NCBI GenBank assembly: GCA_000320545.1 | Contig: ADNK01001700.1 | Coordinates: 1-64,000, forward strand | Length of the DNA stretch: 64,000 nt | Source of the DNA: Bigelowiella natans CCMP2755 | Taxonomy: Eukaryota; Protista; Cercozoa | Direction of reading: 5' to 3' | Part shown: positions 14,792 to 62,905 of the stretch, one piece after another | Numbering within the stretch: the first letter of the stretch is position 1 | Layout of the letters: the number at the start of each line of letters is the position of its first letter | The notes under the pieces: model-generated | What the model was told of the DNA's origin: nothing | The model's input: the letters and a program-made list of their open reading frames with translations, nothing else | Database searches by the model: none | Translations under genes and position numbers: made by a program

Positions 14792-17762
14792 GTAGTAGTA
14801 CAATACCGGAATATACCACCTTGGTATCTATCCCCTCTAAATGGTGTTCGACTACTATTTTCAGGTGAGGAGCCAATATGTCGAGCTTTCCCAGCAAATG
14901 GAAGTCCTCAAGGCGAGAAAGTCCGATTTCGAGCATCGGAGAGACAACAAGAGGAACGATGACGAAGTGCCAAAGCACCATGGTGACAATTCTGGATGCA
15001 TTGGTGGCGAAATAAAAGGGGGAAGGACTGATGCGCAGAGAGAATCGAAGCGAGAACATAATCTGCCCCACTCTCTAATTTCGCGCCATCAGAATAAGAG
15101 AAGACATCAGGTACAGAAGCAGCAGCAGCAGGAGCAGAAGGCGGAGGATGGATCAGCTACAGCATCATCATTTTACGATCTAAAAACTAGATCTCATGTA
15201 AGACCTGTAGCTTCATCAACAAGAGACAGTAAGAAGGCCAAAACAAATAATGGAGGGTTGGGGAAGACCGACCGCAGTACGGCTGTGTTGACGCCCTCTT
15301 CCCTATCTCGACGTGAGCTCAAGACAGTGGAGTTCTTTTTAAGATCGGAAGCCTTCAGAGCTGAAGCCCGGCAGGCTTTCCTAGCTGCAGTAGCAGAAGG
15401 GGACCAACAACCACTGGAAGTGTCTCGAGATAATCGTCGTCAACACCATCCGAGGGGAATTAGACTCGGGGAAGGCGTGCTGCCAGTTGCCGAATTCATG
15501 AAAGCAGTCGCCCCCCTTCTCGTGATCATCGTTGCGAGACTTCCAGAATTAGCACCCATTTTATCAGATAGTAGTAGAAGCGTGACTGACATTGAAGTTG
15601 GGAAGCTATTACGTTCTTTCGAAGGGCGAGACACTTTGAGTATTAGCGAGGGTCTTTTCCTTACTTTATCGCGTGAATATATACGCATGTGTTGCCTTTC
15701 GCTATACGTTGAGGAATGGCAACAGGTTCTCTCTTGCTGTAGTAACCAAGTTGATAGTAATGAGGAACATCTCACAGCAGAATCCGAAGGAGGCGGCCTT
15801 TACAAGGCTAATAAAATAGTTCGTCGCCGTCATCCTAGCGCCCGAAGAAACGCTCTATCCATGAAAGTGGATCTTATACATCCAGCAAAACTACCAGTTG
15901 AAGCATTAACTCTTCGGTTGGACATTGACTACAATACAAGGATAATGTCAGAAAAGGATGCGGATGTCAATCCGCGGTTCCAGGATTTGCATACGATTCG
16001 TAAGCCAAACATGGAAGCAGCTGTCGTAGAGCCTCAACTCCCACCCACGGAGGACACAAGTATTCCGTCCCAGGACATCCATGAAAAACGTGTTTTCGGT
16101 TTTGAGCACAGGCTGGGAGTGTATTTGTTGGATGACCGAAAGAGGAAAGTACTGTTTGCCAGCGGGATGTTTATCGTGGAAGAAGATTTGGACTCCGGAG
16201 AGCAGATTTTCAATAAATGCGAAAGCAGAGTCTGTTGTTTCGCCATATCAAATGACGAAAACAACCGGACCCTAGTCGCAGCGGGCACTTCTGCTTGCAT
16301 CCTCGATGGCACTACTCCCTGTGACGCAAGCATCGTAGTGTTCAATAGGAAGAATGGCTGTATTCTACGTTGTGCGAAGGCCCACAAAAGCGAGGTATTA
16401 GCGTTGGATTTCTCGCATGACAATTCATATTTGGCTTCTATCGGTGGATGCCCTCGGATTAGGGGGGACACGCTAATAAAAGTCTGGAGGATCATCGAAG
16501 ATTCTCGTAGCATTATTCAGGTGGCAAGTCGGCGTATTGGACGTAGCGAAGGGCTTATAAGAAGGTAAAATGCTAGCATTCGTCTTGGAGATAATAGTGG
16601 GGGGAAATAGAGAGCACGTTCTGGGCTTAAAAAATATAATTGTAGACTATGCAGAGTTACGAATAGAAATATACATTATTTCTCCTATTTGTCAGGGTGA
16701 AGTGGTCACCTAACTCGCGGCGTTTTTTTACTATCGGAGAGCGCCATCTGGAAGAATGGGAAGTAGAGGAGGAGCATCATCATCTGCGAAAGATGGAAAT
16801 CGAGGTCAATTCCAGCAGCAAGTTGAGTCCCTTTCCTTCGCTTTTGTGCTGCACGCATGATGCAGACGGAAGCCTGTGGGTAGGATGTCGTGGAGTTTTC
16901 GGGGATGCATACCGAGTCAAAGATGGAAGGGCGCTGGGAAAGCAAATTCTCCACAATGGAGGGTCGGTGACATGCATCTGTAAATACCAGGACGGTTTCA
17001 TCAGTGCTGGAGAGATAGGTGGAATATGTGTTGTGGACGGCAAAGGCCAAATCATACGCTCAATAAAGCTACCCGAAGAAGGCGTGGTTTCTCTTAGCGT
17101 TCTCAACGAGTCTGTTGTCATCACGACGATGTCAGGTTCGGTGTATTTCGTGGAGACACTCTGCCAGATTCGCTCTCTTGAATCGCTGTTCCCTATTATG
17201 CAAGCTAATCCGGACGGCGTGGCTGAAATGGATGTTTTCTTCTTGAAATCTAGAAGCGAAGCAGGGGAGGGCAAGGAAGAGAAGGAGGAGGAGGAGGGAG
17301 AAAAGGAACTCAGGGGGAGGATTATAACGGCGGGTTCTAATGGAAGTTTCGTCATGTTTGAGCTTAATAATTCAAAGAGAATTACTAGGACGACACTATC
17401 AAGGAGGATGATGATGATATGTCATGATTTCCAAGGGCTAGGTGCTGTACGGTTTTCTCCTGACGGAAAACAAATTGCAGTGGGCCACAAGGAAGGCGTA
17501 TCCATTCTAGACGCTTCGTCCCTGGAAGTGCTTGTTCACATCGAATTGGAGAAAAACTTCCCTGAGAAAGACAGAAATCGTAAGGATTCTGAGGACGACG
17601 AAGAAGATAGAGGTGACAGCAGTCAACAAGCTAGGATCACAAGAAAAACCTGGAAGATGGTCACGTGCTTAGCTTACTCACCACAAGGGGGAGGGGGGTT
17701 GACAAGTAGCAGCACCCTCCTCGCTGTTGGCACGGCTGCAGGAGTAGTGCACATTATCGACT

Positions 17763-17796
<34 letters not shown>

Positions 17797-18195
17797 AAAG
17801 AGCTCGGAGGGAAAAACGACCTTGCTATCATCGATACAATCTAATATGTATTCAGTACGCCACATCGACTTCGGAGTCGCTTCGATCACCCCTTCTTCTC
17901 TGACAAGAAGCAAAGGATCATTAAAGCACAATGACGGTGCTAAAAGAAGAGGAGGCTCGGCCTCCGATTTCCAGCACGCTATTATCAGAACCGCCGACAC
18001 AGGAAATCAGATTTCGTACATATCAATTGATACGCATACGTGCAGACAGCGTCTCCTCTCGCCATCCTCCTCCTCCTTCAAGGAGCATCTCGAAAAGATA
18101 AAATGGCTAGGGTATTCCTGCCCCTTTGTGTGGGGCACTCAAGGCTGCGGAGGACCCACACATCAGCACCAACTTGAACTCGAATGTGTTGCTGC

Positions 18196-18229
<34 letters not shown>

Positions 18230-21200
18230 TATAGCAGTAATAGTAGTGCGGATGACAACACTAACAGCCTAGTAGTAATGGGGGACTCTTTCGGCGCCAT
18301 TTCTCTATTCAGATTTCCCTGTTTGAGAAATGACAACGGACATCGACGGAAACGTGCACATTGCGGCGGGGTAAAGGACCTTCGATTTTTAAATCGATCT
18401 GTTGTTAGCCTGGGAGGGGATGGAACTGTACTACTCTGGGAGCTACAAACCCCCCCAGATAAATATAGAAAATACTCCTGGGAAGAGGAAGAAGCCTCGG
18501 ATAAAAACGCGAAAGAAAAATATAAGAAGGCGCGCCTAAAAAGGATGAAATCGAAGCTAAGCCCTTCTACAAAGTCGAAGCAGCGGCAAGAAGAATTCGT
18601 ATTCCTTGCTGATAAGAAACATCAGTCGTCAACTCAGGTCCTCACACTCTCTCTGCTGATTAACCACGCTGATAAATTGACGAGAGAGGCAGTTTTTGTT
18701 CAAAAATGTCGGCTGCAGTTTAGAAAAACAGATCGTCAATTCTTGGGCAGGATTCCAGTTTCTTGCGCAAAAGACATTGTGCGCCAAATTTGGAACGATT
18801 TCAGGGCAGAGCACAAGGACTTTGCCACTTGTTATTCAGCCGAAATATCGGATATAATATTTGACGCAGCGAGGGCCTTAGAGGATGATGAGCAAAATCT
18901 GTACGATGGAAGCTGTATGGTGGAAGGAGAATTCGATGAAGAAGGACTCATAAACTTTGCTCGTGGAACTATCGTACGAAATACTGCAGAAATGTTTCAA
19001 GATCCAGGAATCCAAGATATACATGTTGGGGGTCAGCATCATCTTAGTAGAAACAGTCCATCTTACTTGCATTCCCGCTTTCGGAATGGTATAGAAGCAG
19101 CTGGTGAGATTCCTCGTCTAGATTTGAAATTGGAATGGGCATATGGCTACAATTCAAGCTCATCCTATGGCTCCAATCTATACTTTGATCCGTTTGGAAG
19201 GGCCATATATCCTGCCGCGGGGGTGGTCGTAGCTTTTGACGTTGAGCACCACCACCAATCTCACTACATCGCAGGAGAAGAAGTAGTATGCATGTGCAAG
19301 GCCCACCATGATCCATCTCTGTTTGCCATTGCCACCACAAAAGGAGGGGGAGGCGGGGGAGGCGAAACAGAAATCACTGTTGACATCCATATCGTTAGCT
19401 CCTCATCAATAGGCGGCAAGGCCTTGCTTCCCAAGTTCGTTATATTAAAAGGAGCTCACAAAGGAGGGGTAGCCACTATGGGATTCTCGGCTGATGGAAA
19501 TCTGCTTGCATCTGTCGACTCCAAACCGCCATACAAAATCAAACTCTGGGCCTGGAAGGAAGGATTACAGGTAGTGTACAAAGAGTCCAAACGAGTAGGA
19601 GGCAATAGTGATGAGAAGACGATGTTCCCGATATACGATCTCCAATGGCATATGCGAAACAATAACGAATTCGTGGTCGTGGGGAAAAAGTACGTGGTAT
19701 TCTACTCGGTAGTACGTGATGAGGATGATGACTCAAGAACCATTACTCTCAAAAGTAGCAGCAGCAGCAGTGTTCCAACCAATTACTCGACAACGGCAGC
19801 AGCAGGAATCATCAGATGCGAGAAAACGTTTATCTGCTGCACCTACATGGAAAATGGCGCGGTAGCGGTGGCAACAAAGGGAGAGGGATCTATTCATGTG
19901 TTTCGAAATTTCAGTTTCGAAACTACTATCAAAGCTCACAGGGGTACCGTCTTATCCCTGACGCAGTGGAAAGAGGGTATTATCAGCGGGGGTATGGATG
20001 GAAAACTCATCACGTGGAAATTGAAGCAGGATGGAGCAAAAACAAAGTTGTTACCGATTGCCTCAATGGAGACAAGATATGCAATAAAATCAATTGATGC
20101 CTTCGAGGAGAAGCTGCTGATCGGCACGAGCTCTTCGCATATATTCCATCTCACCAATTGGCTTCGAGCCCGTGAGCAGAAAACTATGCAGCCTTCTATG
20201 TTGTTCCATGAGATCGACGTATTAGCAGTCGGGATAGTTGGAAACTCCAATGTTGCAATTACCATAGGTAGTGACAATTCCATTCGAAGTTGGGACCTAA
20301 ATACAAAACTTCAGCTCCAAAAAGGGTCTCTGAGTGATTATCCTGGCTTACAGCTACGTGAAGGCTTTGAAAGTCCCTCTGCAAGCGCCACCTGCCTTGC
20401 GGTTCACCCTGAGGAACTCTATTTAGCACTCGGTACTAGAGCTGGAACAATCTTAATTTTCGATCTGGATACTTTTGAAATAATACGAGGGCGCGATCTC
20501 GGGCCTATAGGAAGCACGGACAACCAAAGGAGGAACCTGCTGCTACCAGCTATTACGTGCGTACAATACTCGCCAATGGGCGACGTCCTCGTAGTTGGCA
20601 CCGAGCACGGATCAATTATCCTATGCGATGTGCCCGAAAAATACTCCCCTAAATGTGTGCTGTTGCCTTTCCCACCACCGTGTAAAAAACACGTTCATCG
20701 TTGCTTTATCTCGAAGATGGATTGGTCAGAAGACGGACGCTTTGTCCGCATTCTGAATGGCGAAGGGAGCATTTCTGCTATCCGTGTTGAACCCTCAAAT
20801 TTAGGGCGCTCTTCTTCTTCTTCTCTTATACTGGATGATAGTATTGTTGTTGGACAAGGCTGCACCTCCGTGAAATGGTCTTCGCAGCACTGTGTCGTCG
20901 ATAGATTGAAAATACCATCATCGTCTGACCAATCTAGGTCGTAGTCTACATACCTATTATCCTTTCTTCATGCTTAAATTTTCTGTCTGTCTGTTGATAG
21001 ATATGATAGATTATGCGACTGTTGTATCAAGCAGCTCCTTTTTTTTTTGGTTTCGAGTGTGATATTTGTGTTCTCTCTATGTTATGATTAATAGGACGCA
21101 ACCATTGTACTGCTTGGATGTTCATTCTGAAGACCCTGTCGGTGTTCTCATCGATTCGGACGGATCAATGGCCATTACTTGTCTTGAGTCGTCTTTCATC

Positions 21201-24200
21201 AAAAAGGAGTTGGGATTACGGCGGTATAGCGGCCATCTCGCATGCAGCCAAGCGCAATTCGCTGACCATGGCCGCAAGTTAGTCTCGATTGGAAGGGGGC
21301 GCACTATGTTACAATGGAGATACCGAAATACAGCAGCAGCAGCAGCAGCAGCAGCATCGTCGAAGAGACTTACCGTTCTTTCGGACACAAGAAGGGTTCC
21401 GAGAGCTCTTGAGAAACTTCGCAGCCAGGAGGAGAAAAAGGCATTCACTCGCGCGACAAATGTCGAGGCGCTAAAACGAGCGATTCGGGCGAAGCCTGAG
21501 GCCTTCGCCAAAAGGGCTTTGGAGGAGCTACAGAAAATAGGGAAAAAATCTACAGATGCGCAGTTGAGTGCGGAGGATTGCCGTGAGTGCCTTCAAAGTA
21601 TGTGGACATGGATGCTCGACAACTGGAAGGGCGATCGCTGGAAGTGCCTTTCCCGCCAAATATGTCCCCAGACGAGCTCTGAGCTTACCGAATCGTTTAA
21701 CTTGGAGACTGGGCGGTCGGTCTCCGGATCTACTTGGGAGGAGTTTTGCACATTCTCCATGACGCATCTTGTAGCTCTGAACTGGATGACTCATATAGGC
21801 TTCCCCCTAGAGGACAGCAGCACACTGCACACAATACGATCCGCCCACTTGGGTGTGGTGCTTTCAGATGTCACTAAAAAGAATAACCTTTCCCAGCTCA
21901 AAGATTATGCTGTCGCTGAGGAGTACTACAAAGATCCCGAAGATACAAGATGGAGAATGGAGATTGAAGATAAACAGCTGATTCCGTTGCAACGACTTGA
22001 CCAAAAGCCCCAACAGCACCATGGGGGTGGTGGCAAGAGCAGGAAGGGAAATGGGAGCGCGCAGCGAAAATTTGAGCCTGGTAAACCCGAGGAAACCGAC
22101 GAAAAAGAGACTGCTTCGAGGGTGTCCTCCGTTTCAGTCCCCTGTTCAGAGGTCCTTGACCCTACTACCCCTACAGAGTCCCAACTTCAAAGCTTCGATA
22201 AGAGAATGCCTAATCAACAACTTAAGCCCGCATGGGTATATGGTTACAATTTAAGCGCATCCACAAACAATATTCTCTACGACGGATGCGGCCATTTGGT
22301 GTACCCTGCCGCTTGCTTTGCCATTGTTTTCAACCCAGCTACACATTCACAGAGATATCACAACTCAAACGGTGGCCAGATTCTTTCTCTTGCGAGGAAT
22401 CCGGTTGATCCTCAGGTCATTGCTATAGCGGAGGCCGCGACTGTGACAAACGGAGTGAAAAGTATGCTTCCTCAGGTGTCGGTGTTCCACTCTCTTAGTT
22501 TTGTGTCGTTCCGCATCCCGAATGTCATGAAGCATGCCGTCGTATCGGTATCATTTTCATGCGATGGAAAGTTCCTTGCCACCGCACAAGCAGATTCGGC
22601 TACATTGGCTGTATGGGATTGGAGAACAGGGAAAAACATGGCCACGGAAACTGCCCCTCGAGGCAAAATCGTCCAGATCAAATGGAGCAACGTTGATGTA
22701 GGGTCACTTATTTCTGTTGGTCGTTGCCACGCCTACTTCTGGACATGGGAATCCCAACCAGGAAATTGCTCACTTCGGTGCACCGAAGCGTTGACGAAGA
22801 AAAATGGGAAAAGGAACACCACATTTTCGTTGCAGACTTTCTGTAGCGTAGCGCATTTCCCGGCTGGCAAGGTAGCTGTTGGAGCATCTGGTGATGGCCA
22901 AGTCCACATCTTCGATGCTTCGAGTAAGGCTTTGGTGGAGAGCAAGATTATCTATCGTACATCATCGCTTTCTTGTATTTGCGACTGGGACAGCACAATG
23001 AAGATAAAAGGCGGTATTATCGCTGCGAGCGATCAAGGCCATATCACAGGAATAAACGAAAATTTTGAAAAAGCCTTCTTTTTGCAGTTTAAAGGAGAAG
23101 CTATTCACGCAATAACAGTGTTCAATAACCGACTTGCAGTGGGCACTCGAGCAGGCAAGATATACGAAGTAAACCATTTCTGCTCTTCAAAACATGGAGC
23201 AGCAGCTGCTACTGCTGCTGCTAAGAAAAGACTCGTTGTGGTTGGACACTCGAAAGGCGAACTCCAAGCGTGTGCAATGGATCCTAAAAATCCCAAAAGG
23301 GTATTGACGGCTGCAGAAGATGGGAAAATAATTGCATGGAATCTTGAACAGCATTCTCACGTGAGTATACATGATGTTGCGCCGCCATCCGATAAGAGCC
23401 AGGGTGGCCAGGAAGCCCTCAGTCTGGCCATATCAGCAGACGGTGCGTATTTGGTCGTAGGGGTAGTGTCAGGAAGTTTGCATATCTATGACGCAGTTAC
23501 AATGAGTCATTTAACGTCACGGGAAATCGCCTCATATTCCCTTGAGCGTATTGTGAAGCTCGGTGCAAGTGTCGGAATTCGGGCCCTCAAATACAGCCCG
23601 GACAGTCGTGTTTTGGCTGCTGCGGGCGATGGAATGGTCGTGGTACTTCTCGATGCTACGCGAGATCACTTAGTATCCTGTGTTCTTTCCGCTCACACCG
23701 CTCCAATCCAGGCATTGGACTGGTCAGCTGACGGCATACTGCTTCGATCTGTGTGCAAAGAAGGTGTACTTCACTACTGGGATGTTGATACCACCTCACG
23801 GAAGACCCACCGCTCGAAATTGCATCTTCCTCGTTCCTCCCCCGTGATCCAAGACGCATCCTGGCAAACTTCCAACTGTACGGCAGGGTGGGAGGTTCGC
23901 GGTACGATCCATACGTCAACTGGGCTTAATGCTGTGGACCTCATGAGAAAGAGAGGAGGAGGAGGCGGCGGCATATTGATCACTGGCGACGATTTTGGCT
24001 TAGTAAGCTTGTTTCGATGGCCATGTGCGAGCTCCCATCACGGCCAAAGGGCATTCCATGCACATTCCCATCCATGCTTGGGAGTCAAATTTGGACTCGA
24101 TGGAAATACAGCGATTTCCCTAGGAGGGAGAGATAAAGCTATTGTGCAATGGGACCTCTTCGACGACACTTTGTGCCATCAGTACGGAAAGAGCACCGGT

Positions 24201-25890
24201 GATGATGATGATGATGATGATGACACACCGCTTCCTGCTTATATTGATGCGCCTAAACAAAAGAAACAAGAGGGGAGAAAGAGTAGTGATTTTGACATGA
24301 TCTTGGATCGTCTTGACAACCTACTGGATTCGAAACAATTTCGTATCATTACGCGAAAGTGTTTTGTTGATTTAGTTATTGCAGACACGGGAAACCCCCA
24401 AGGCCAGCACCTCTCGAGGAGGCAGCTCATTGTTATTACGTGTAGACTATGGGAATGGGTTCAGCGTAAATTGAAAATTCAGGGCAATCTCGACGAGAGG
24501 AGCATAACCACTACTGACAGAAATGCCGTCGTAAAGATGCTGGTTCAGCGATATGTTGCGGGAGGAGGTGACTCTGAGAAAAGCAGTGATAAAAATGAGA
24601 GGAAGCATCGAAAGGGTAATAGCAAAGTCGTAAATATGCGTGGAAAAGAGCTACCCGAAGCTATACTGTCCAATCTTTCAGAGAGACAATTTCTTATTGC
24701 AAGTCGCCGCTTAATTAGGGATATTTTCAGCGAGATGTTCGAGGAACGAGGCTGTCGCGATGGCCTAGGCCCAGAACGAAGAATCAATCCAGTTGTTCTA
24801 AAAAACGTGCTACCGGATGCTAAAGCGGTGGAAAAGCTCAGGTTAGAATGTGGGGTGACACTAATGAGACCTCGAGATGTCGTCAACATCCCAAGGTACA
24901 CAGCAGGGTTATCGTTGGATCTTCCGATTCCCTTACAGCACCAGCAGCCAATTGGTAGTAGGAGGAAAAACACTATCCGCAACCTTTTTCCTAAGGAGGC
25001 GGCGACTTTAGAAAGGCCTCAAGAAGGAGGGAAGTCAAAAGAAGCAGCTGCTCGAGAAACGTTCAGCAGTAACAGCAAGTCAATCGGCAAGTATATGAAA
25101 CGAATCTTGGTGCACGGAGAGGCAATTCAGCCGTGGAGACGTGTGGTCCACCTCCTCAAACCGTCGTCCAATCCAAAGCGGAACGTTACAAGAATGCCTG
25201 AAAAGAAACTCGAAATCGATTGGGTGCACGGATATAACCCTGTTGACTCGCGCTCGAACGTAGTCCTAAATTCTGCTGGGGAGGTGGTATATCCTTGCGC
25301 GTCGCTGATAGTCGTGTACGACCCCAAAGAGCACTCGCAAAGAATCCTTCGAGGTCATACTTCAGACGTTCGGTGTCTTGCCCAAAATCCTGCAGATTGT
25401 GACATAATCGCTTCAGGTCAAGCTGGCTTCATCTCTAGTGATGGGACTGTTGCTCCACCGATGATTTGTTTGTTTAATACAAGAAACCCAAAACAGAAGT
25501 GGGTCATTCGTGAAGCCCATTTTCGTGCGGTGCGAGCGATGGCGTTCAATGCAAATGGCAAGATTCTTGCCTCTGTTGGAGAAGACCCCGAGGCAACGCT
25601 AAAGCTCTGGGCAGTGAAGCAGTCAAAATGGGTTTTTGAGACCACGCATACAAGTAAGGATTGTGGAATTGATCTACAGTTTTTTGTTCTTTTGTTGTAA
25701 TTGTTGTCATTCATGCATCGTTTTGATGGAGCTTGACCACAATATACTGGTGGTTGCTGATCCTCCGCTGGTGGGAAAAATCGTATCCCAACGTCGACAC
25801 AACGCAATTCCTGCACCCCTCACCAGTAGTAGCAAAAGATGATGTTCCACAAAACTAGACATTGCCTCAAACAATGACCGATTGACACTG

Positions 25891-53264: not shown

Positions 53265-54548
53265 AGGGAGGAGGGGGCTTGATTATCATGTTATTTGTAC
53301 TGCTGACAGCAGACACAGATTGATTTGATAGCATGGATTATCATGCTGTAGTATACATGGGCATGCATTCTCTGGGATCGATACATCGAGAAGATATGAC
53401 AATTTGGTTCGAAAAATTTTACTTGGCCATCCTTCTCCTTTACCTTCTCCTCCTCATCATAATCACCATCATGATCATCATCACCATTAAGATCTATGCA
53501 CTGACTACTACTATTACCTTCTGGCTTCATGCAGCTCCCTGCGAGCGCTCTTGATTAATCTGTTAATATCATTCTTGATTAGTCATTTAATAAGCGAAAC
53601 AGATATCATGAGCATATTTTCTAGAACAGCCGGATGGATTGGATACTCATTCGTTCTAATCGTCTTGATCGATTTATCAGCAATTATCGTCATTTATTAT
53701 CATCTCCATCTTCTTCATCATAATCTCCCTTTTCCCTTCATGTATCGTCAAATTGCATGGTAAGTAAAACCATGCAAATAATGGGTATACTACCTGTTAT
53801 ACATTCTCACACGAATCTTCCAAAATCGCACTTCCCTCTTGGCCTCTACTATGGCTATTCCAGGGCCTCCCTCTTCCCCTGATATTCTATCGACACGACT
53901 CTCCGACGAAGAGGCTGGAGGGGGAAGAATCACACGAGGTTGTTGTTGCGGGTAAAATGACAGTCCGGTCACTGCTGCTTTTCTATAGTGTGGGAAGAGA
54001 TTATTAAGTCTCTCGGATAGTCTAGGTGATGGGGAGAGTGGTGACAAGGAAGAAGCTTCCTGTGATACGTATGATGAGACTGCGGAAACCGAATTACCCT
54101 GGGACTGTTGATGAAGGTGTGGTAGTTGTGAGAATATGACGCGATGATCATGGTGATGACGTAGGCAGCGTCCTCGTGGACGCAAGTTGAGCGCAGGAAG
54201 GGTTCGTGGCGAAGGAGAAGAAGAAGAAAATAGGCTAGTAGTATGTGATACTGCATGAACGGCTCTTTTCAGGCTTCCCCCTCCCCCTTTTTGCACGCGT
54301 AGCCCCTGAGCTCCGTGTATAATCAAAGCGGAGAAAAACAACACCGAAATAACGCCCCAAATTCGAAGAGAAGAAGCTTTTTGCGAAAACGGACGAGGGG
54401 CATGTGCCTGGCGACGACGACGTGGACATGGAAGGGAGGAATGGTGGCCTGCTTTCCATGTTGATATCCTCTCCAAACGTAACCCCGTCCAATCATCTCC
54501 ATCATCCCAAACATATTTGAAGGGGTGAGGGGTGCTTGGAGACACCAT
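46274..54548 (-). CDS. Alpha/beta-hydrolase (lipase-like, HSKGG nucleophile motif) with bipartite-like leader and coiled-coil N-terminal region, multi-exon
   Basis: Leader with hydrophobic WGVISVLFFSALIIHGAQG followed by a Ser/Arg-rich stretch. Hydrolase exons: YVFVPGFLW, KKVVLVTHSK|GGIDSAAALSLY, GIVFCQCPFGG, SDGLVIPEDAEIPGSSVV. It could be two genes. Confidence 0.65.
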
Positions 54549-55303
54549 ATGGGCCTCCTTAGAGGACTCTGCTCTACGTTTTGGCAGAAAGGGGGGGAGG
54601 AGCTATGTTCGAGAGATTGTGTGGAGTTTTGCAGGGTGTTTTATTTTTAATTATGTTCATATTTAGCTTGTCGCAGCAATAAGGAGGACTACATTGTGCA
54701 TAATCTCTCCTAACAATTCAGGGGGTACTCACACGATCCAAAAAGAAAAGTCGGCCTGCGCGCCTGCGCACAGCCAAGCAATTTCGAACCATGACCTTTT
54801 CAAAATCCCTTTCATCTTGAATTGGCGACATCAAATCTGACAATCATCTCACAAAAATTGCTTCTGTTTTCTCACAAGCTGGAAGGAACATTGGGATGAA
54901 AATGAAAATTTGTCGCTCACACTAAATTCCTTTCTTTTTGTGTTGCAGGGATGCCTCAACAACCCCGCGCCAAGCTGGCAAGGACTCTCTAGCTCTGTCC
55001 TGCTGCCATGACGCCAGCACGCTGTTGCCTTCACGCTGCACCCAAGTGAGCGACGTGCTGCGGACCAGCGGAACCAAGCCAGATGCTTCCTCAAAAAATC
55101 CATGAAAATTTCACACGAGGATTGTCATTCATGTTGTGTGCCCTTTGCATTCGAATTTTGTTCTGGCACACGTGCGACGCCACACACTGCCAGACTGCCA
55201 GGTTTTGCAATGTCTCTGCACCTCTGAGTCTCCACTGGTCCAGACCTGCCAACCTCTCTAGCTCTGGAGCCAGGCCCAGCAATGTCACGCTGGTTGGTGG
55301 TCC

Positions 55304-55629
55304 TGTAGCGCGTACCACTACGCGGGCACAAGTCACGTGCGACAACAAAGGGGTTGTCGCGGATATAGAATATAGATAACGTAGATATTAATACAGCATA
55401 GGCACGTGGGTTCCGGCGGGACTCATGGCAGCACACCGGAAGTGTGCTGCCCCACGTGCGGCGGCATTCGCGAAAGCTTCGCGAATGATTACGCAGTGCA
55501 CGATTTAATAAAAATATAATCTTTAATAAAAATAAACACAACTCTTCAAAAGGAAGCAAACGTGCCTTTCCCCCCCCCTGCCTACTTGTGCACGTAGCGC
55601 CTCGGCCTGTGAACACCTTACGCGCAACA
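55304..55629 (+). repeat. 5' LTR
   Basis: Starts TGTAGCGCGTA and ends TACGCGCAACA (10/11 inverted termini). Direct repeat of 60694-61019. Confidence 0.97.
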
Positions 55630-55634
55630 ACCTT

Positions 55635-55652
55635 TGGCTTCCACACACGGGA
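55635..55652 (+). promoter_or_regulatory. Primer binding site (complementary to a tRNA 3' end; isotype not determined)
   Basis: TGGCTTCCACACACGGGA lies 5 nt after the 5' LTR. Its reverse complement ends ...GTGGAAG-CCA. Confidence 0.75.
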
Positions 55653-55668
55653 AACGATTTGACTAACA

Positions 55669-58600
55669 ATGTCACAGCAGCTAGAAGAACAGCAGGACTT
55701 TGGCTCGCAGGCCGTGCAAGGGCACGAGCAGAAACAGGAAAGGAAGGGCGATACGGACGCTAAGGAAGGAGGAGGAACACCTCCACAGGCACCGCCGGGA
55801 CCAGCACCCGGGATTAAGAAAGCAGATGCAGCAGCAGAGGCACTGGAGAACTTCTACGAGGCGGACGACGAGGACGTGGCCGCCGAAAGCAAGAAGGTCG
55901 TAATGGCATTACGAGCCTTGCGACCCAGGGCGAGCAACTACGCCAAACTGAAAGTATCGATAGAATACAAGTATCAGACACATGATGTTTGGGCAGCTAT
56001 CATGCAGGACATCATGGATTACGAAGCAGACTTACCTCCAGAGTGGGCAGCTTTGTTTAGGAACGACGGGGGTCTGGGCGCCTCGCGGGGGACGACCCAG
56101 AGCACCGTCAAGCAGCAGCAGCCGGTACAGCGGAACACCCAGTTCATGTCTGTTAAAACAGCACCGGTTATGATAACGAAATACAACGGGAAAAGAGGTG
56201 AGGCAAGGAGGTGGTGGAAGAACGCTAGGAGTATACTCTGCGACTTTACCCCTAACCCCACCGAAAACGACAAGCTCAAATGGCTAGCTATAATAAAGCA
56301 AGCCATGGACCTTTACGAGACAGGCAGGACCCGGATCAGGCAGCTAGAGAAAATACACACTACAGTTAGTGGGCTACGAGACGTTGAGGCGATAATGAAG
56401 GCTTTTGTAAATGAACAGGATGCTAACTCCCTACCCCAGGCTATTAGAAAATACAGAGCAATGATGCAGCATGAGAGAGAACCTGTTAGAGACTTTGCCA
56501 CGCGCTTCCAGGATATGATCGACGAACTACATGATTTTAATTACAACACAGGTGATGATCAGGCAAGGTTTGAAGAGTTCAAGTTAAAGATAAAGGAATC
56601 CACTTACGTTACGGAGAAAGGCTACACCACGATGGAGGCAGCAGTGCAGGCTATATCCCTACGCGAGCAGGAGCAGGACCGCAAGTTTACCAGCCCTAAG
56701 GTACCTGGCATAGGAAACATTAACGCTATTAAGCCGCAGCGAGACTGGTACAAGGACAGGGAAGGTAACCGACGTTGCGGATACTGCTCACGTAAAGGGA
56801 AACACACCGCTAAAGACTGCAGAGACAGGAAAGAAGGACGACCCAGGATGACGATCAGGCAGCTCAACGAACACTACGAGAAGTTAAAGAGAAAGAAAGG
56901 CAGAGGACAAGGATATAACAACAGCAAATGGCAAGGCAGCAACAACGGGAAGAACAATAAATATAAGAACAAAAAGCAGAACAGTATCAATGCTATACAG
57001 CAGCAGATAAACGGAATATTAGATCACCTTAAGCAGGCGCCGACGAAGACAGCAGTACCAGCAACGCAGGACCAAGACAAGCCCATGACCCTAGACGACA
57101 TAAAGAACTTAGGAGTATGCAACATTAATGACGAAGACGCTAACAGGACTATCAAAGTTGCTATGACCAAGGTTAAAGTTAAAGACAGCTACGGAGACTA
57201 CAAGAAACTACCTGCCCTTTGGGATAGTGGCAGCATGCCGAAGTCCTTCATAAGCCTAAGCACAGTAAGAAGGTTAGGACTATTGGATCAAGTGACTAAG
57301 AAAGAACGTAAATATGCTCAAGCAGACGGAAGCTCTTCCATGAAGACCGTCGGTGAGCTAATGCTAAAGCTACAGATACCTGGCAGCGACGCGGAGACCC
57401 AAATCAAGACCCGAGTAGCCATGACTTTATCCATGGAACTACTCCTCGGACAGGATGCCCTAGAAAAATTAGGGGGGATCATATCATTCTACAATCACAA
57501 GATATACTTTGCTAAGTTGCCAAAGAAGTCAGGCAGGACCATCAGCCAGAACATGATACGGCTTGACGAGTGGACCTCTGAGTCAAGCGTTAATGCGTTA
57601 GAGTTTATGGACCTAGCGGACAACAAGCTACCTACACCTACCGAGCTACGGAAGAAGAACCCCGGCAAGACCATCCGACAGATAACGGAGCTACTGGACA
57701 AGACCCCCCCAGCTGATGATTGGGATATCGACAAAGGCAAAAAGTACATTAATAAAATATTAAACGAGAAGTACTCTGACATCACCAAGCCGACGACGAA
57801 GCCCTCCAGCAAGCTTACCCCAGTAAAGATCGAGCTAAAGAAGGGATACGAAGAGTGCATCATCAATGACCCAGAACATAGGCGACCGGAAGCGGACTGG
57901 GAAAAGATAGAGTGGCAGATCAATGAATGGGCAAAGGAAGGGAAGATAGAGCCAAGCAACTCACCATGGAACGTGAGACATGTGCTAGCTAAGAAACCTA
58001 CTTACCCTTTCTTCCGCCTGGCGCACAACTTCATCCGCCACAACCGAGTAATAAAGAGGATCCAGACACCTACACCAAGGATAGATGACGTTATTGAACA
58101 CGTCATAGGATACAAATACTACTCTTCCCTAGATAAAAATGAATCATACATGCAGACACCCATCCACAAAACCTCCCGCCCCATTACCGCGTTCTCCAGC
58201 AGGCACAGGAAGTGGCACTTCGTCGTATTCCCTTACGGCCTAAGCATATCAGGGGATGCGTTCAGTAGTCAGAACTACAGGGCATACACACATGATGGGA
58301 TGGCGTCTGTGTTGTGGGTGTTTGTGTTTGTGTATGTGGATGATGACATAATATGTACCAACACAGTCGTCGCTCAGATCTTCCTCCTGGAAAATATATT
58401 TATTAGGTTTGCACACTTCGGTTTTACTATTAGACTGCAGAAGTGTACATTCCTAGCTACAAGAATCAAGTGGTGTGGATATTACCTGGAGCAAGGCCGC
58501 ATCACCCCAAACCCCGAGAAAGTAGCAGCACTACAGCAAGCCCCTAAACCTAAGAATGCAAAGGAGTTAAAGTCATTCTTGCAGACTGCAGCTTGGATAC

Positions 58601-60642
58601 TACGTAGGTTCTCCCCTACCTACGCTAGGACTGCAGCTGCTTTTACTACTGCTTACCGGAAGGAGAACTCTGTAGGCCTCAGCTTCGCTAAGGTGTGGGC
58701 CAAGGCTGGCCTTGATGCCCACTTCGATAACCTAATAAAGTTATGCAGCAACACCCTATTGAATGCTAAGCTAGACACTACTAGACCAGCTACCCTATGG
58801 ACAGACTGGTCTAAGCTAGGTATGGCTGCTGTACTTACCCAAGACCAGCAGATCATACGGGTGTGGGGCAGGGCCTGCACAGCAGCTGAGGCCAAGTACA
58901 GCCCTACAAAAGGAGAGTATAAAGCCATGACTGAGGCGCAGAGGAAACTAAGATACTACCTGCTGTCGGTGCCCAGCTTCACCTTAATGACTGACCACAA
59001 GCCCCTCCTAGGCATCGACCGCAAGCTCGAAGCGCCTAACGATGAGTATGCAGCTATGAGGGCGGACACGGAAGAGTTTAGGGACAAGAGGACAGTGGTC
59101 TACGCACCAGGAGACAAGCAGCTTGCTGACTATTTCAGCAGGCTGTTCGAAAAGAAAGTCCCTACCCAGGTCACCCCTATGGTTAACGCGATTACCTTCG
59201 AGGACGGCGACTTCCTGCCTGAGCCAGAGGAGCTCCAGCACCTTCAAGAACACCTGGATAAATACAAACACAAGCATGAGGTACTTAGTGATAGGATATA
59301 TGTATACACTAATAATGTTAGGCGTACCTACGTGCCACGGCGGACCAGGGGAGCCCTTCTCTTTACCGCCCATGGACCTGCACACGTAGGAGAAAACCAT
59401 ATCACTGCTCTACTCTACCATTACTACTGGCCCTACAAGCTAAAAGAGATAAGGACATACCTGCGTGGCTGCAGGTGCTCCAGCTTGAAGGCGGCAGGCG
59501 TCGCCACCAAGGAGTCCAGCAAGAGCCGTGCATCTAAGAAAATCAAAGCAAGGAACTTCTTAGATATCGTGCAAATTGATGTTTATAAGTACGATGGCTA
59601 TCACTACCTTACCTTCGTTGATGTGGCCACTGGAAAGTGCTGGGTTAAAAAGATTATCAAGGTCAACGTTGCTAAGAAGAACAAAGGCTTATATAAGCAG
59701 AGGCATACTAACTGCTACCGTACCTGGGAGTCTGAGCTCCAGGCTATCCCTGATGAAGTTAGCATAAACAAGATACCAAAGAAGTTACATGTGGATAATG
59801 AGACCTCTCTTCTACAGCTACCACACCCTAATATTGATGCCTCACCTGTATACTATGCCCAGTCCAACTCCAAGGTAGAGCGACTCCACCGCACCTTGGC
59901 CAACCTAAGCAGGATAAATAGCACCACACCAGACAAGATACAAGGGTTAGTAAACGACACCTTCACGTCTGGGGGAGGTATCAAGGATAAGGAGAGGGAA
60001 GAAGGCGACGACAACGACGACGATACCGAGAGCGAAGACGAGAAGGTCCCGTACGATGGCCGAGTTCTAAAGGAAGGACAGTATGTTAGGGCCAAGGTAA
60101 ATCTGAGATCGAGAAATAAACAAGACCCCTTCTGGGGTGGCGTTGCAAAGGTTACCGAGAGGAAGGGGAGGAAGCAGTACTACATCTATGATGGGAACAG
60201 GGTCACCTTGCGCCACATCAGTCACCTAAAGAATTATGATATCGGTGAGAAGCTCCTAGAGGATGTTAAAGTAAACCCTACTGTGTGGGAGCGAGCAATG
60301 CCTTGTTTAGGACCCCGACCTAAGTTCGATGTGGAATATGGAAACAATAAGGTCAGGGTGAACGACGATTGGCGCATGAAGATTGTCTATCTAGGCTACC
60401 CTGGATTACGAAATATGGAGAGGGTAGCTATGAAAATAAAGGACGGAAAATATCAGCTACTCTACCTAGCTGTTCCCGACTTACCCTTTGAGCACTGGTA
60501 TAAGGTCCTGGGGGACCTTGATGCAGAGGGCTGGTATGGACACGAACCTAAGGACGAAGGTGAGTTCTGGGTAAGCGACAAAGGAGATAAGGTTAGAGAG
60601 GAATCTATTACCTGGTGGTTGGTGAAGTTCCGAAAGCGATGA
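55669..60642 (+). CDS. Single-ORF Gag-Pol polyprotein (1657 aa) with extra C-terminal domain
   Basis: Gag (Q..RE.V.DF..RF), zinc knuckle CGYCSRKGKHTAKDC, protease ALWDSGS, RT (SNSPWN, PYGL, YVDD), RNase H (WTDWS..GMAAVL, TDHKPL, ADYFSR), integrase (H..AH..C.C, QIDV, VDNE, SNSKVER), GPY/F-like region (DPFWGG) and an about 130-aa tail. Confidence 0.95.
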   Translation: MSQQLEEQQDFGSQAVQGHEQKQERKGDTDAKEGGGTPPQAPPGPAPGIKKADAAAEALENFYEADDEDVAAESKKVVMALRALRPRASNYAKLKVSIEYKYQTHDVWAAIMQDIMDYEADLPPEWAALFRNDGGLGASRGTTQSTVKQQQPVQRNTQFMSVKTAPVMITKYNGKRGEARRWWKNARSILCDFTPNPTENDKLKWLAIIKQAMDLYETGRTRIRQLEKIHTTVSGLRDVEAIMKAFVNEQDANSLPQAIRKYRAMMQHEREPVRDFATRFQDMIDELHDFNYNTGDDQARFEEFKLKIKESTYVTEKGYTTMEAAVQAISLREQEQDRKFTSPKVPGIGNINAIKPQRDWYKDREGNRRCGYCSRKGKHTAKDCRDRKEGRPRMTIRQLNEHYEKLKRKKGRGQGYNNSKWQGSNNGKNNKYKNKKQNSINAIQQQINGILDHLKQAPTKTAVPATQDQDKPMTLDDIKNLGVCNINDEDANRTIKVAMTKVKVKDSYGDYKKLPALWDSGSMPKSFISLSTVRRLGLLDQVTKKERKYAQADGSSSMKTVGELMLKLQIPGSDAETQIKTRVAMTLSMELLLGQDALEKLGGIISFYNHKIYFAKLPKKSGRTISQNMIRLDEWTSESSVNALEFMDLADNKLPTPTELRKKNPGKTIRQITELLDKTPPADDWDIDKGKKYINKILNEKYSDITKPTTKPSSKLTPVKIELKKGYEECIINDPEHRRPEADWEKIEWQINEWAKEGKIEPSNSPWNVRHVLAKKPTYPFFRLAHNFIRHNRVIKRIQTPTPRIDDVIEHVIGYKYYSSLDKNESYMQTPIHKTSRPITAFSSRHRKWHFVVFPYGLSISGDAFSSQNYRAYTHDGMASVLWVFVFVYVDDDIICTNTVVAQIFLLENIFIRFAHFGFTIRLQKCTFLATRIKWCGYYLEQGRITPNPEKVAALQQAPKPKNAKELKSFLQTAAWILRRFSPTYARTAAAFTTAYRKENSVGLSFAKVWAKAGLDAHFDNLIKLCSNTLLNAKLDTTRPATLWTDWSKLGMAAVLTQDQQIIRVWGRACTAAEAKYSPTKGEYKAMTEAQRKLRYYLLSVPSFTLMTDHKPLLGIDRKLEAPNDEYAAMRADTEEFRDKRTVVYAPGDKQLADYFSRLFEKKVPTQVTPMVNAITFEDGDFLPEPEELQHLQEHLDKYKHKHEVLSDRIYVYTNNVRRTYVPRRTRGALLFTAHGPAHVGENHITALLYHYYWPYKLKEIRTYLRGCRCSSLKAAGVATKESSKSRASKKIKARNFLDIVQIDVYKYDGYHYLTFVDVATGKCWVKKIIKVNVAKKNKGLYKQRHTNCYRTWESELQAIPDEVSINKIPKKLHVDNETSLLQLPHPNIDASPVYYAQSNSKVERLHRTLANLSRINSTTPDKIQGLVNDTFTSGGGIKDKEREEGDDNDDDTESEDEKVPYDGRVLKEGQYVRAKVNLRSRNKQDPFWGGVAKVTERKGRKQYYIYDGNRVTLRHISHLKNYDIGEKLLEDVKVNPTVWERAMPCLGPRPKFDVEYGNNKVRVNDDWRMKIVYLGYPGLRNMERVAMKIKDGKYQLLYLAVPDLPFEHWYKVLGDLDAEGWYGHEPKDEGEFWVSDKGDKVREESITWWLVKFRKR

Positions 60643-60684
60643 AGGTCTAAGGGAATAAGGAAGGAAGGAAGGAGCAACGTGACT

Positions 60685-60693
60685 TGGGGGAGG
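60685..60693 (+). promoter_or_regulatory. Polypurine tract
   Basis: TGGGGGAGG abuts the 3' LTR and is preceded by purine-rich AAGGAAGGAAGGAAGGAG. Confidence 0.85.
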
Positions 60694-61019
60694 TGTAGCG
60701 CGTACCACTACGCGGGCACAAGTCACGTGCGACAACAAAGGGGTTGTCGCGGATATAGAATATAGATAACGTAGATATTAATACAGCATAGGCACGTGGG
60801 TTCCGGCGGGACTCATGGCAGCACACCGGAAGTGTGCTGCCCCACGTGCGGCGGCATTCGCGAAAGCTTCGCGAATGATTACGCAGTGCACGATTTAATA
60901 AAAATATAATCTTTAATAAAAATAAACACAACTCTTCAAAAGGAAGCAAACGTGCCTTTCCCCCCCCCTGCCTACTTGTGCACGTAGCGCCTCGGCCTGT
61001 GAACACCTTACGCGCAACA
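60694..61019 (+). repeat. 3' LTR
   Basis: No differences from the 5' LTR seen by eye; followed by the TSD GTCC. Confidence 0.97.
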
Positions 61020-61766
61020 GTCCAAGCTGGCAAGACCACTCTGCTAGCTCTGGCATGCACTCGTGCCAGCGTGGCAATGCCCAGTTGCCCCACCTGGCCA
61101 CACAAACTGGCAAAATGGCTGGCTGGCACACTGGGCGTGCACTTCAAAATTGTTTCCATTTCATCACAATGAACACGAAACAGCGGCACACCCAGCCTCT
61201 TCCAGTCTTCACACCTTGGTCTTGCACATCACACACCCTTGCACAGCAGCTCACTCTGTTCACTCCAGTCTGGCAGTGTGTCAGCTTCAAATTGAACTGC
61301 TTGGTTCTTCGTCAGTCACTCCAGAGTTCCAGAGTTGACAACTGCACCACATTGCCAACCAACCAGCTGGAATCCCAAGTGCGCAGCAACGCTGTGCACT
61401 TGTTTGCGCGGCATTGTTTCATCAGTTTCATGCACAGTGCACAGCCGCAAAACGACAATGATGCATGAATGAGAGTGGCTGGTGCACAACCTTGCCAGCT
61501 TGCAGCTCCAGAACTTGTGTGTGGCGATGCCACGTTTGAACGTCTAGACGTGGTCGATGATCGATGCAACAACGTGCGTGTGCGCCATGATGATGGCAAC
61601 GCTCTGGCTAGCTAGACACTCATTGCACGTCACATTGCCACCTCCAGACCTGCTGGTTCCAGAGCTGGTCTGCAGTTTGGCAGCAGCTGGCTGGCTGCCA
61701 ATGACACAAAAAGTGAAATTGCTTCACTTGGTGTTGCAATGAATGCACGTACGTTTTGTCCAGAAT

Positions 61767-62480
61767 TCAGTCGTTGTCGATGCCTGCAAATGCCACGCAA
61801 AAGGCCAATCCATCGCAATGACGTAGTTTTTCTGCTGCAGTGATGATGGAGCCCGCGTGCACGGTGGGCCAGTCCAGCAGTGGGTGTCGATCCTCCTTGC
61901 CATTCACGTTGTGTTCCAAGTGTTTGGAAAAACCACCATCGTCCACACAGTCTTCAGTTCTCAACTTTTTGATCATCATGCGGAGATCAATTTTCACGAA
62001 GAGAGGATCAGGTGGAAGGTTGCCTGGAGAAGCAGAACCACAGAACCACAGAACCACGTTGTTCTTGCGTGTTGAGACGTTGGCGTCAAAAAAGACACTG
62101 CACGTTCACATGAGCTGCAACAACAAACCTTTCCTGTGCACAACCTTGCTTGCTGGTAGCTGAATGTCTCACGAGTCAATCCAAGAAGTTTGAACTCCAA
62201 TCCCGGAAGTGGTCAGGGAGGTTGTTTGGGAGTGAACACTTTTCTTCACTCGCATCCTGGCAATTCGCACGTTTGCACCAAGTGGGATCATTCTGCCCTG
62301 CACGTAATCTGCAATGTCCAATTGTCCGATGAATCATGTTGTGACGTGTGTGGATGCAGGGCATGAGACCTGATCATGGCCCAACGAACGTGAGGTTGTG
62401 AGGCATTGATCAGATCCAGACAAACGTGAAGTCCACGTGCATGCTTCACAATCGGCAGGCATCTCCTTTCATGTCGCACT
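61767..62480 (-). pseudogene. Degenerate coding remnant inside the TpA-depleted island (identity unknown)
   Basis: ORF fragments with GT..AG intron-like gaps (e.g. ...CTCCAG|GCAAC). Peptides are almost Tyr-free and His/Cys-rich, and the frames do not join cleanly. Confidence 0.3.
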
Positions 62481-62905
62481 TCCTAAACACCAGATGTTCA
62501 GCAGGAAAGATAGTGCTGCGAAAAAATTCCATTTAAAACTAGTTTATGGTCTGTCGCAAGAAGGCATCGTTTTTCAAAGGACGACAGCGGATAGTCCTCA
62601 CTAATGCAAACAACCGTCCAAACTTGAAAAGCAAAATGAGTCACAAAAAGTGACATATTTTTCCTCCTTGACCCAAGAAATATTGATGTCGTAGTAAATA
62701 AATAACCTGCATTTGGAGGTATTAACGGATAAAAGATTTAGTGAATTCCTGCCTCACAAACGCGGAGTCGTCGTTTTGTTGGTTGTGACTGTTTAGGGGG
62801 GAGCAAACCCCTCAATGTTGGATAGCTATGAAAATATGCTGAAGCAGGATTATAGCAGAAGTCACACATGATTCTGCTATTTTTGGTAGATTAAGTTAAA
62901 GTACA

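Follow-up and report, generated by a model that had tools for sequence, protein, structure and literature searches.

A young Ty3/gypsy-type retrotransposon family of Bigelowiella natans nests in TpA-erased DNA and is itself spared from erosion

In the genome of Bigelowiella natans CCMP2755, an island of DNA from which the dinucleotide TpA (hereinafter also TA) has been almost erased is interrupted by a TA-rich long terminal repeat (LTR) retrotransposon of the Ty3/gypsy type, and the locus raises the question of which of the two came first and why they are found together. The analysis covered the first 64 kb of contig ADNK01001700.1 (positions 1 to 64,000, hereinafter the window), the relatives of the element elsewhere in the genome and public sequencing runs. 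The island itself is a further small example of an already published hypermutation process; the new, family-wide result is that a very young, expressed retrotransposon prefers TpA-erased DNA and is itself spared. We consider it likely that the DNA was eroded first and that a young Ty3/gypsy-type element was inserted later, its family either targeting eroded DNA or surviving only there. The features of the locus are as follows.

54728..55303, no strand: left half of the TpA-erased island, 3 TA against 35 expected, CA/TG excess, single copy
55300..55303, no strand: target-site duplication GTCC, left copy, read from the sequence
55304..55629, plus strand: 5' LTR of 326 bp with TG..CA ends and 24 TA, identical to the 3' LTR and carrying poly(A) RNA reads
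55669..60642, plus strand: single gag-pol frame of 1657 amino acids (aa), an open frame with domain matches
60040..60240, plus strand: integrase C-terminal SH3-like domain, from an AlphaFold2 (AF2) model with a fold match to the C-terminal domain (CTD) of PFV integrase
60244..60639, plus strand: conserved C-terminal methyltransferase-like domain, from fold matches, reading GYPG at the presumed place of an NPPY-type loop
60686..60693, plus strand: polypurine tract GGGGGAGG directly before the 3' LTR, read from the sequence
60694..61019, plus strand: 3' LTR, identical to the 5' LTR
61020..61023, no strand: target-site duplication GTCC, right copy, read from the sequence
61020..62482, no strand: right half of the TpA-erased island, 8 TA against 87 expected, single copy

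Dinucleotide counts give 3 observed TA against 35.3 expected in the 576 bp of the left half and 8 against 86.6 in the 1463 bp of the right half, an observed/expected ratio (O/E) of 0.09 in both, and there is no TA at all between 61047 and 61544. The complementary products are in excess, with O/E values for CA and TG of 1.39 and 1.72, respectively, in the left half and 1.82 and 1.76 in the right half. By comparison, the element between the two halves (55304-61019) contains 397 TA (O/E 1.13), and the value for the whole window is 0.84. A sliding scan with 400-bp windows found TA O/E below 0.3 in just two tracts of the 64 kb, namely, the island and a subtelomeric tract at ~362-1310. The edges of the island at 54728 and 62482 are sharp, with TA-normal DNA adjoining it, and the two halves, when rejoined, make up 2.04 kb that are interrupted by 5.7 kb of TA-rich element.

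The two LTRs (326 bp each) show 0 differences, have TG..CA ends and are bounded by GTCC on both flanks, and the first TA of the LTR sits 3 bp inside the junction, so that the switch in composition falls exactly at the target duplication. An earlier reading made from the letters of the window alone (hereinafter the sequence-only reading) had described the identical LTRs, the exact switch, the TA counts of both halves and the TA-free tract, and all of these are confirmed, with CA and TG at 1.4-2.0 times expectation; the start of the 3' LTR is corrected to 60694.

A process that leaves this kind of signature, TpA-to-TpG/CpA hypermutation, has been shown experimentally in B. natans (Mettrop et al. 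2026, bioRxiv 10.64898/2026.01.13.699255, hereinafter the hypermutation preprint), which bears out the proposal of the sequence-only reading that a TpA-removing process operates away from the telomere. In mutation-accumulation lines, 231 of the 302 new point mutations fell in two viral regions, one from an integrated giant virus and one from a virophage, and 230 of these 231 were A>G or T>C changes that the authors place on TpA; genome-wide, they report 124 clusters of TpA-poor, CpA+TpG-rich 1-kb windows, mostly with unannotated genes, and they propose an adenine deaminase as the cause (10.64898/2026.01.13.699255). We infer the identity of the mutator at the island from this work. Both halves of the island lie below the TpA-depletion cut-off of the preprint (Rho <=0.43), and the 1-kb site value of 1.79 for the reciprocal CpA+TpG enrichment lies above its other cut-off (Rho >=1.52); the rejoined island, short and split by the element, does not span the three or more consecutive 1-kb windows that define a cluster, which in the preprint is a matter of detection rather than of biology. 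The words LTR, gypsy, retrotransposon, CTAG and telomere are absent from the text of the preprint, and the tie between a retrotransposon family and the TpA-poor tracts (hereinafter deserts), together with the sparing of that family, is what the present analysis adds.

A search of the genome (91.4 Mb) yielded 22 further full-length copies of the element, which are mutually identical and differ from the copy in the window by one base (59705), and LTR divergence is zero in all 23 copies. A 35-nt LTR segment that includes nine TAs has 657 exact matches in the genome, 659 matches if each TA may be CA, TG or CG, and 661 once up to three arbitrary mismatches are tolerated; the family thus counted comprises ~660 LTRs, that is, roughly 330 elements, essentially none of which is TA-eroded.

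The flanks were analysed for 23 of the roughly 330 copies, the one in the window included. The median TA O/E is 0.18 within 0-250 bp of the element, 0.39 at 250-500 bp, 0.55 at 500-750 bp and ~0.7 beyond 750 bp, and CA and TG are raised in step with the loss of TA. At 17 of the 23 rejoined 1-kb sites, TA O/E is at or below 0.43, compared to ~5% expected (binomial p = 6e-18), 0.43 being the cut-off of the hypermutation preprint for the lowest 5% of 1-kb windows and one that marks 5% of the 64-kb window too. Examined site by site, ~19 of the 23 insertions fall inside TA-free patches, whose median size is ~0.9 kb, and their positions are biased toward the middle of the patch (Kolmogorov-Smirnov p = 0.011, n = 17; 0.0014 for patches of at least 500 bp). 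The nesting of this family in TpA deserts is not due to chance, and the insertions are non-random with respect to deserts.

The flanks are mutually unrelated save for microsatellites and one 322-bp repeat that is common to two loci at 83% identity, and each copy has its own target duplication, with the 4-bp duplications being perfect in 21 of the 23 copies. The two imperfect duplications (GTCA versus CACA in copy L024 and TGTT versus CGTT in copy L025) include one, the first, that may represent a recombinant between two copies. Host genes, those for a GH7 glycosidase and a nucleoside hydrolase, start 0.2-0.6 kb from some of the insertions, indicating that the patches are intergenic.

Several simpler accounts of the choice of sites were rejected. 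Insertion into a single repeat family is incompatible with flanks that share only microsatellites and the 322-bp repeat; tRNA-gene targeting fails because none of the 23 loci contains a tRNA gene; old copies of the element underlying the deserts were discounted, as neither the flanks nor the rest of the window outside the element show pol homology; and a site motif is not apparent, the information content staying under 0.4 bit throughout the 20 bp on either side. Up to 1 kb from the insertions, the flanks of copies L009, L010, L012, L014, L016 and L018 often contain compound (CT)n(GT)n and long (GT)n/(CA)n microsatellites, and intact (TA)n tracts were observed outside the deserts (L014, L017 and L025). 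It is possible that the flank microsatellites originate from (TA)n that the mutator turned into (TG)n/(CA)n.

The island was eroded before the insertion because later mutation would have to stop with single-base precision at the LTR ends. The TA located 3 bp inside the LTR is intact in all 23 sequenced copies, the nine-TA segment further inside is intact in 657 of 661 LTRs, and the target duplications show no TA-to-CA/TG drift between their two copies. The sequence-only reading had offered three alternatives, namely, that the island had already been mutated when the element arrived, such islands being targeted or tolerated, that the element is too young to be hit, or that it is protected; with 17 of the 23 copies residing in unrelated deserts and their TAs intact up to the LTR ends, the first is the best supported. 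A different idea, one-shot deamination of the single-stranded DNA exposed by repair at integration, was rejected given that CA and TG are in excess left and right alike, whereas this model predicts a mirrored asymmetry.

The reverse order of causes, whereby silencing at each copy recruits the mutator to the flanks while the element is protected (for instance, by its methyltransferase-like domain) or refreshed by gene conversion from cDNA, has some appeal, considering that the insertions sit roughly at the centre of their deserts, which extend ~250-700 bp to either side, that sense and spliced antisense RNAs of the element are both present, and that the integrase carries the methyltransferase-like domain. 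Nevertheless, we consider this very unlikely: the switch is exact to the base and the LTR TAs next to it are intact; the two duplications that are imperfect differ otherwise than by TA-to-CA/TG changes; left and right flanks show no mirrored CA/TG strand asymmetry; GYPG appears to replace the catalytic NPPY-type loop; and there are deserts free of the element, such as 362-1310 in the window, besides the 124 clusters listed in the hypermutation preprint.

The element is not detectably a substrate of the mutator. For the viral region, the rate per TpA is 211/(6169 x 3132) = 1.1e-5 per generation; at this rate, one copy with its 397 TAs would be hit about every 230 generations, and the nine-TA LTR segment would receive 0.065 hits per generation over the whole family. 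TA-eroded variants of this segment number two among 659. The time needed to build up and fix ~330 copies must far exceed a few dozen generations and, combined with the scarcity of eroded segments, this implies that the family is not mutated at anything near the viral-region rate. The alternative of an element too young to be hit is accordingly sound in that the family is nearly identical, but youth alone is unlikely to explain the intact TAs.

Some variation within the family does involve TpA. The site equivalent to 55400 carries TA>TG in 18 genomic LTRs (~2.7%), most of which occur two per contig, some at a distance of 5153-6384 bp compared to the usual 5390, the rest being single matches. 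RNA editing, considered as the source of the A>G change seen at 55400 in 9% of RNA reads, was rejected on account of these genomic LTRs: the G marks a DNA subfamily because the LTRs that carry it are mostly paired at typical LTR spacing, like the two LTRs of one element. CATAGG-to-CATGGG variants (TpA to TpG) are present at both 55400 and 56712 in 7-9% of RNA reads, and the 55400-G subfamily is over-represented in RNA relative to its share of genomic LTRs. Altogether, there are about five credible variants among the copies, two of them TpA>TpG. In one copy (L009, G000 C1247:9409-9564), a further partial LTR, 156 bp long, lies directly upstream of the 5' LTR. At 59705, the copy in the window has A (CAT, His, pol residue 1346) where the 22 others have T (CTT, Leu), and every read and contig in four public runs shows T at this position; the A reflects either an assembly error or a mutation private to the copy in the window, in the integrase region.

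Taken together, the proposed course of events is the following. Hypermutation would have eroded the single-copy intergenic island almost fully, leaving survivors mostly in CTAG; afterwards, one member of a very young, transcribed, high-copy Ty3/gypsy-type family would have integrated, giving rise to the GTCC duplication. The family would land in, or persist only in, TpA-erased patches of ~0.5-2 kb, usually near the middle. Directed integration, which we favour with moderate confidence, would mean that the integrase reads a DNA or chromatin state common to the old targets of the mutator, with the methyltransferase-like C-terminus of the integrase as the candidate reader.

Selective survival would account for the same pattern if integration were near-random and insertions could persist only in DNA without function, much of it deserts, the genome being gene-dense and probably haploid. 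The proximity of host genes to some insertions (GH7 and the nucleoside hydrolase, see above) points to a small neutral space, the bias toward the centre is also expected if desert edges border functional DNA, and the sites are devoid of a sequence motif, all of which is compatible with survival. However, deserts make up ~5% of windows whereas callable intergenic DNA accounts for about one third of the genome (Table S1 of 10.64898/2026.01.13.699255), most of the intergenic spacers in the 64-kb window are not deserts, and survival would have had very little time, the copies of this young family being identical to this day, in which to yield a ~15-fold enrichment. We regard this explanation as possible but doubtful.

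What, then, is the island made of? A DNA search with each half, where the sequence-only reading had envisaged one with the rejoined island, found both to be single copy in the genome and revealed no unmutated paralogue or ancestor. The Pfam scan of the open frames in the right half gave nothing significant, the sole match being Ndc1_Nup (E 0.018, 14 bits), which is under the family cut-off; for the left half, the one scanned open frame that extends into it (53790-54545) had no Pfam match. There is no coding signal in the island among the open frames scanned with Pfam, and neither these frames nor six desert frames of other loci produced a significant Pfam match that would indicate viral or transposon origin. 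Long open frames are to be expected in deserts because TAA and TAG cannot occur there. The island is probably orphan intergenic single-copy B. natans DNA that was driven almost to saturation by TpA-to-TpG/CpA hypermutation.

A context rule shared by many deserts bears on this interpretation. The set analysed for context consists of 57 unrelated segments from the window and the flanks, 27.6 kb in total, in which CTAG retains 0.89 of its background density, compared to 0.06-0.27 for the nine other NTAN classes; four of the eight TAs left in the right half of the island lie in CTAG. From Table S2 of the hypermutation preprint, we counted manually in which trinucleotides the 211 mutations on scaffold 10 occurred; 206 of the TpA mutations are on this scaffold and 20 on scaffold 146. 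The base 3' of the deaminated A is A in 67 cases (observed/expected 1.53), C in 52 (1.06), G in 20 (0.45) and T in 67 (0.97), with chi-square p = 1e-5. The expectation here is the TAN shares of the 64-kb window and not of the viral region. In the latter, being half-depleted by now, resistant contexts should be over-represented, and the real aversion to a 3' G is therefore probably stronger than measured. Because CTAG alone has a 3' G on both strands, this aversion in the mutation list of the preprint partly accounts for the survival of CTAG. Full immunity of CTAG, for example, via a CTAG-specific modification, is possible as well. Either way, the aversion to 3' G narrows the search for the mutator enzyme.

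In the same table, A>G at TAG was recorded 3 times on scaffold 10 compared to 17 times for its strand mirror, T>C at CTA (binomial p = 0.003), with the other three context pairs balanced between strands. The imbalance could stem from a strand effect or, in the viral region, from the orientation of genes and the avoidance of stop codons.

The possibility that the TA-poor make-up is native to the island, owing to compositional constraint or to the acquisition of DNA with such a make-up, and is no mutational scar at all, draws on the failure of the genome search to find an unmutated relative, so that the direction of change is unseen at this locus. This seems extremely unlikely given that CA and TG climb as TA falls, that the same signature recurs in the 57 unrelated segments, that the contexts in which TA survives agree with the bias seen among the preprint's de novo mutations, and that the island is devoid of a coding signal.

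The element has the hallmarks of Ty3/gypsy: TG..CA LTRs, a short target duplication, a polypurine tract and, from Pfam and PDB alignments, the domain order protease, reverse transcriptase, RNase H, integrase. The gag-pol frame shows weak matches to gag and the aspartic protease, followed by the reverse transcriptase (aa 798-939), RNase H (aa 1018-1118) and the integrase zinc finger and DDE core, which were aligned to PFV integrase; the protease and zinc-finger matches fall under the curated cut-offs of Pfam. Against jgi/Bigna1 gene models, the element's proteins show matches at 100%. Pfam scans detected no chromodomain in the element, which separates it from the chromoviruses.

The C-terminal tail of the integrase has no Pfam family in its methyltransferase-like portion, a PDB sequence search with the C-terminal domain returned nothing, and a feature search of the ESM Atlas with the C-terminus gave no usable match. 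An exhaustive profile search found 64 relatives in a representative library, and an alignment of 34 sequences was modelled with AF2 at a predicted local distance difference test score (pLDDT) of 96, compared to 46 for a 2-sequence alignment. Residues 1-67 of the model match the CTDs of retroviral integrases, the best match being PFV integrase (4bac_A, Z 8.4, root-mean-square deviation 2.3 over 64 residues), and residues 69-200 match the alpha/beta methyltransferase fold, with N6-adenine enzymes at the top: the cap adenosine-N6 methyltransferase PCIF1 (6irx_A, Z 7.1, 117 residues) and then KsgA (3uzu_A, Z 6.4). These Z values are middling and, for this reason, we label the tail methyltransferase-like and go no further. 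The motif GYPG is conserved within the tail family and, judging from the strand order of the model, appears to occupy the place where the catalytic NPPY-type loop is expected. Its position at the end of the integrase makes the tail a candidate for the choice of integration site.

An arms race over adenine between the retrotransposon and the mutator can be imagined, in which the tail reads or marks adenines, steers copies to DNA where erosion is finished and shields the TpA of the element itself. Such a scenario, which we deem improbable, would explain how ~330 identical, transcribed copies stay untouched inside eroded DNA, and the deserts would then mark the targeting unit of the mutator, ~1 kb.

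Public sequencing runs show the state of the locus in other samples and the expression of the element. All 14 DNA runs hold each of the 152 sampled words of the right half unchanged, where only the 8 TAs are left, and contigs of a 2021 DNA run extend from each flank 25-26 nt into the LTR with no mismatch, which fits an occupied allele. A check for an empty-site allele, which the sequence-only reading had suggested, found no joint of 55303 to 61020 among the joints listed for four runs. The element produces abundant sense RNA that is polyadenylated in the LTR, with ~13,800 RNA reads having poly(A) after 55551 (60941 in the 3' LTR), downstream of AATAAA, which is the LTR polyadenylation site. 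No swarm of A>G changes at TpA was seen in the RNA of the element.

Contigs from a probable RNA run contain, inside 55630-60693, more than twelve joints that span 60-350 nt and have CT..AC ends, two of which are backed by a few raw RNA reads. These correspond to GT..AG introns on the minus strand and, hence, spliced antisense RNA exists beside the sense RNA. In low-depth DNA contigs of two runs, the LTR end is joined to the LTR start (55629/55630 to 60693/60694; 61019/61020 to 60693) with 1-4 extra letters; these joints could come from 2-LTR circles or tandem elements, hinting at ongoing retrotransposition in culture.

At the telomeric end of the window, CCCTAA repeats occupy 1-361 and are directly followed by the second TpA desert (~362-1310), which includes a 504-bp TA-free gap and next to which an apparent reading frame ends near 1334. 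The host genes near the telomere lie in 4781-6505 and 14841-25697 of the window; these stretches include an ORC5-like gene and three large frames (575, 1415 and 1544 aa) with WD40 matches, the two largest of which strongly match EML beta-propellers.

Several observations weigh against erosion followed by insertion of a family that targets, or survives only in, eroded DNA. With no ancestor or paralogue seen, the TA-to-CA/TG direction at this locus derives from composition and the hypermutation preprint, the island shows no evidence of foreign origin, and its silenced state is only an assumption. The sample of copies with analysed flanks is small relative to the family, and selection in a compact haploid genome could produce both the enrichment and the centre bias without targeting. 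An older, eroded layer of the family could exist among the variant copies with LTR spacings of 5153-6384 bp, and the assembly may average reads across near-identical copies, thereby hiding private mutations. Furthermore, the reach of the junction contigs into the LTR is under the 31-nt bridging rule.

The desert adds little, given that the process has been described, and it is the nesting that matters for understanding that process. A general anti-repeat defence should hit ~330 identical, expressed copies first, and the family appears untouched; thus, targeting by the mutator cannot rest on repetition or transcription alone. Moreover, a fresh insert that stays intact in the middle of a patch implies either that the patch has ceased to be a target or that sequence, not position, is what defines the target. 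The preference for deserts is a simple genomic read-out that could reveal the chromatin or DNA state recognised by the mutator.

Among known systems, the closest is the viral hypermutation of B. natans itself, in which the organism and the signature, with TpA down and CpA and TpG up, are the same as at the island (10.64898/2026.01.13.699255). The island differs from the clusters of that preprint in being 2 kb long, split by an element and under the three-window definition, and the Pfam scans of its open frames gave no significant sign of viral or transposon origin. LTR retrotransposons with DAM domains likewise have an adenine-methyltransferase-like module fused to pol; their DAM domains keep the catalytic pocket and are linked to N6-methyladenine (6mA) and active transcription (Fernandez-Moreno et al. 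2026, 10.64898/2026.05.21.726589), whereas the B. natans tail, for which Pfam scans returned no family, reads GYPG where the catalytic loop would be expected. The text of the latter preprint does not mention Bigelowiella.

Fungal repeat-induced point mutation (RIP) resembles the process at the island in consisting of dinucleotide-specific transitions that leave sharply bounded, skewed islands in selfish DNA. However, RIP is C-to-T mutation at CpA in duplicated DNA, turning CpA into TpA and enriching TA, so that the chemistry, the polarity and the outcome are opposite to those found here; it is also triggered by duplication, whereas in B. natans the target is a single-copy island and ~330 identical copies are spared. 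Defence editing by ADAR, ADAT/TadA and APOBEC similarly involves deaminase-type transitions with a strict 5' neighbour, and a U/T preceding the edited A is likewise a feature of ADAT substrates. In contrast to these, the change in B. natans is fixed in DNA, on both strands and in single-copy DNA.

Finally, directed integration is well known among retrotransposons: the chromodomain of chromoviruses reads heterochromatin marks, Ty5 is guided by Sir4, Ty3 goes to Pol III genes and Tf1 to promoters. As in these elements, the copies of the B. natans family are concentrated in a narrow class of sites, and the integrase has an extra domain at its C-terminus. Unlike them, the B. natans family has a methyltransferase-like tail instead of a chromodomain, its sites feature neither neighbouring tRNA genes nor a motif, and its target class is defined only by a mutational scar.

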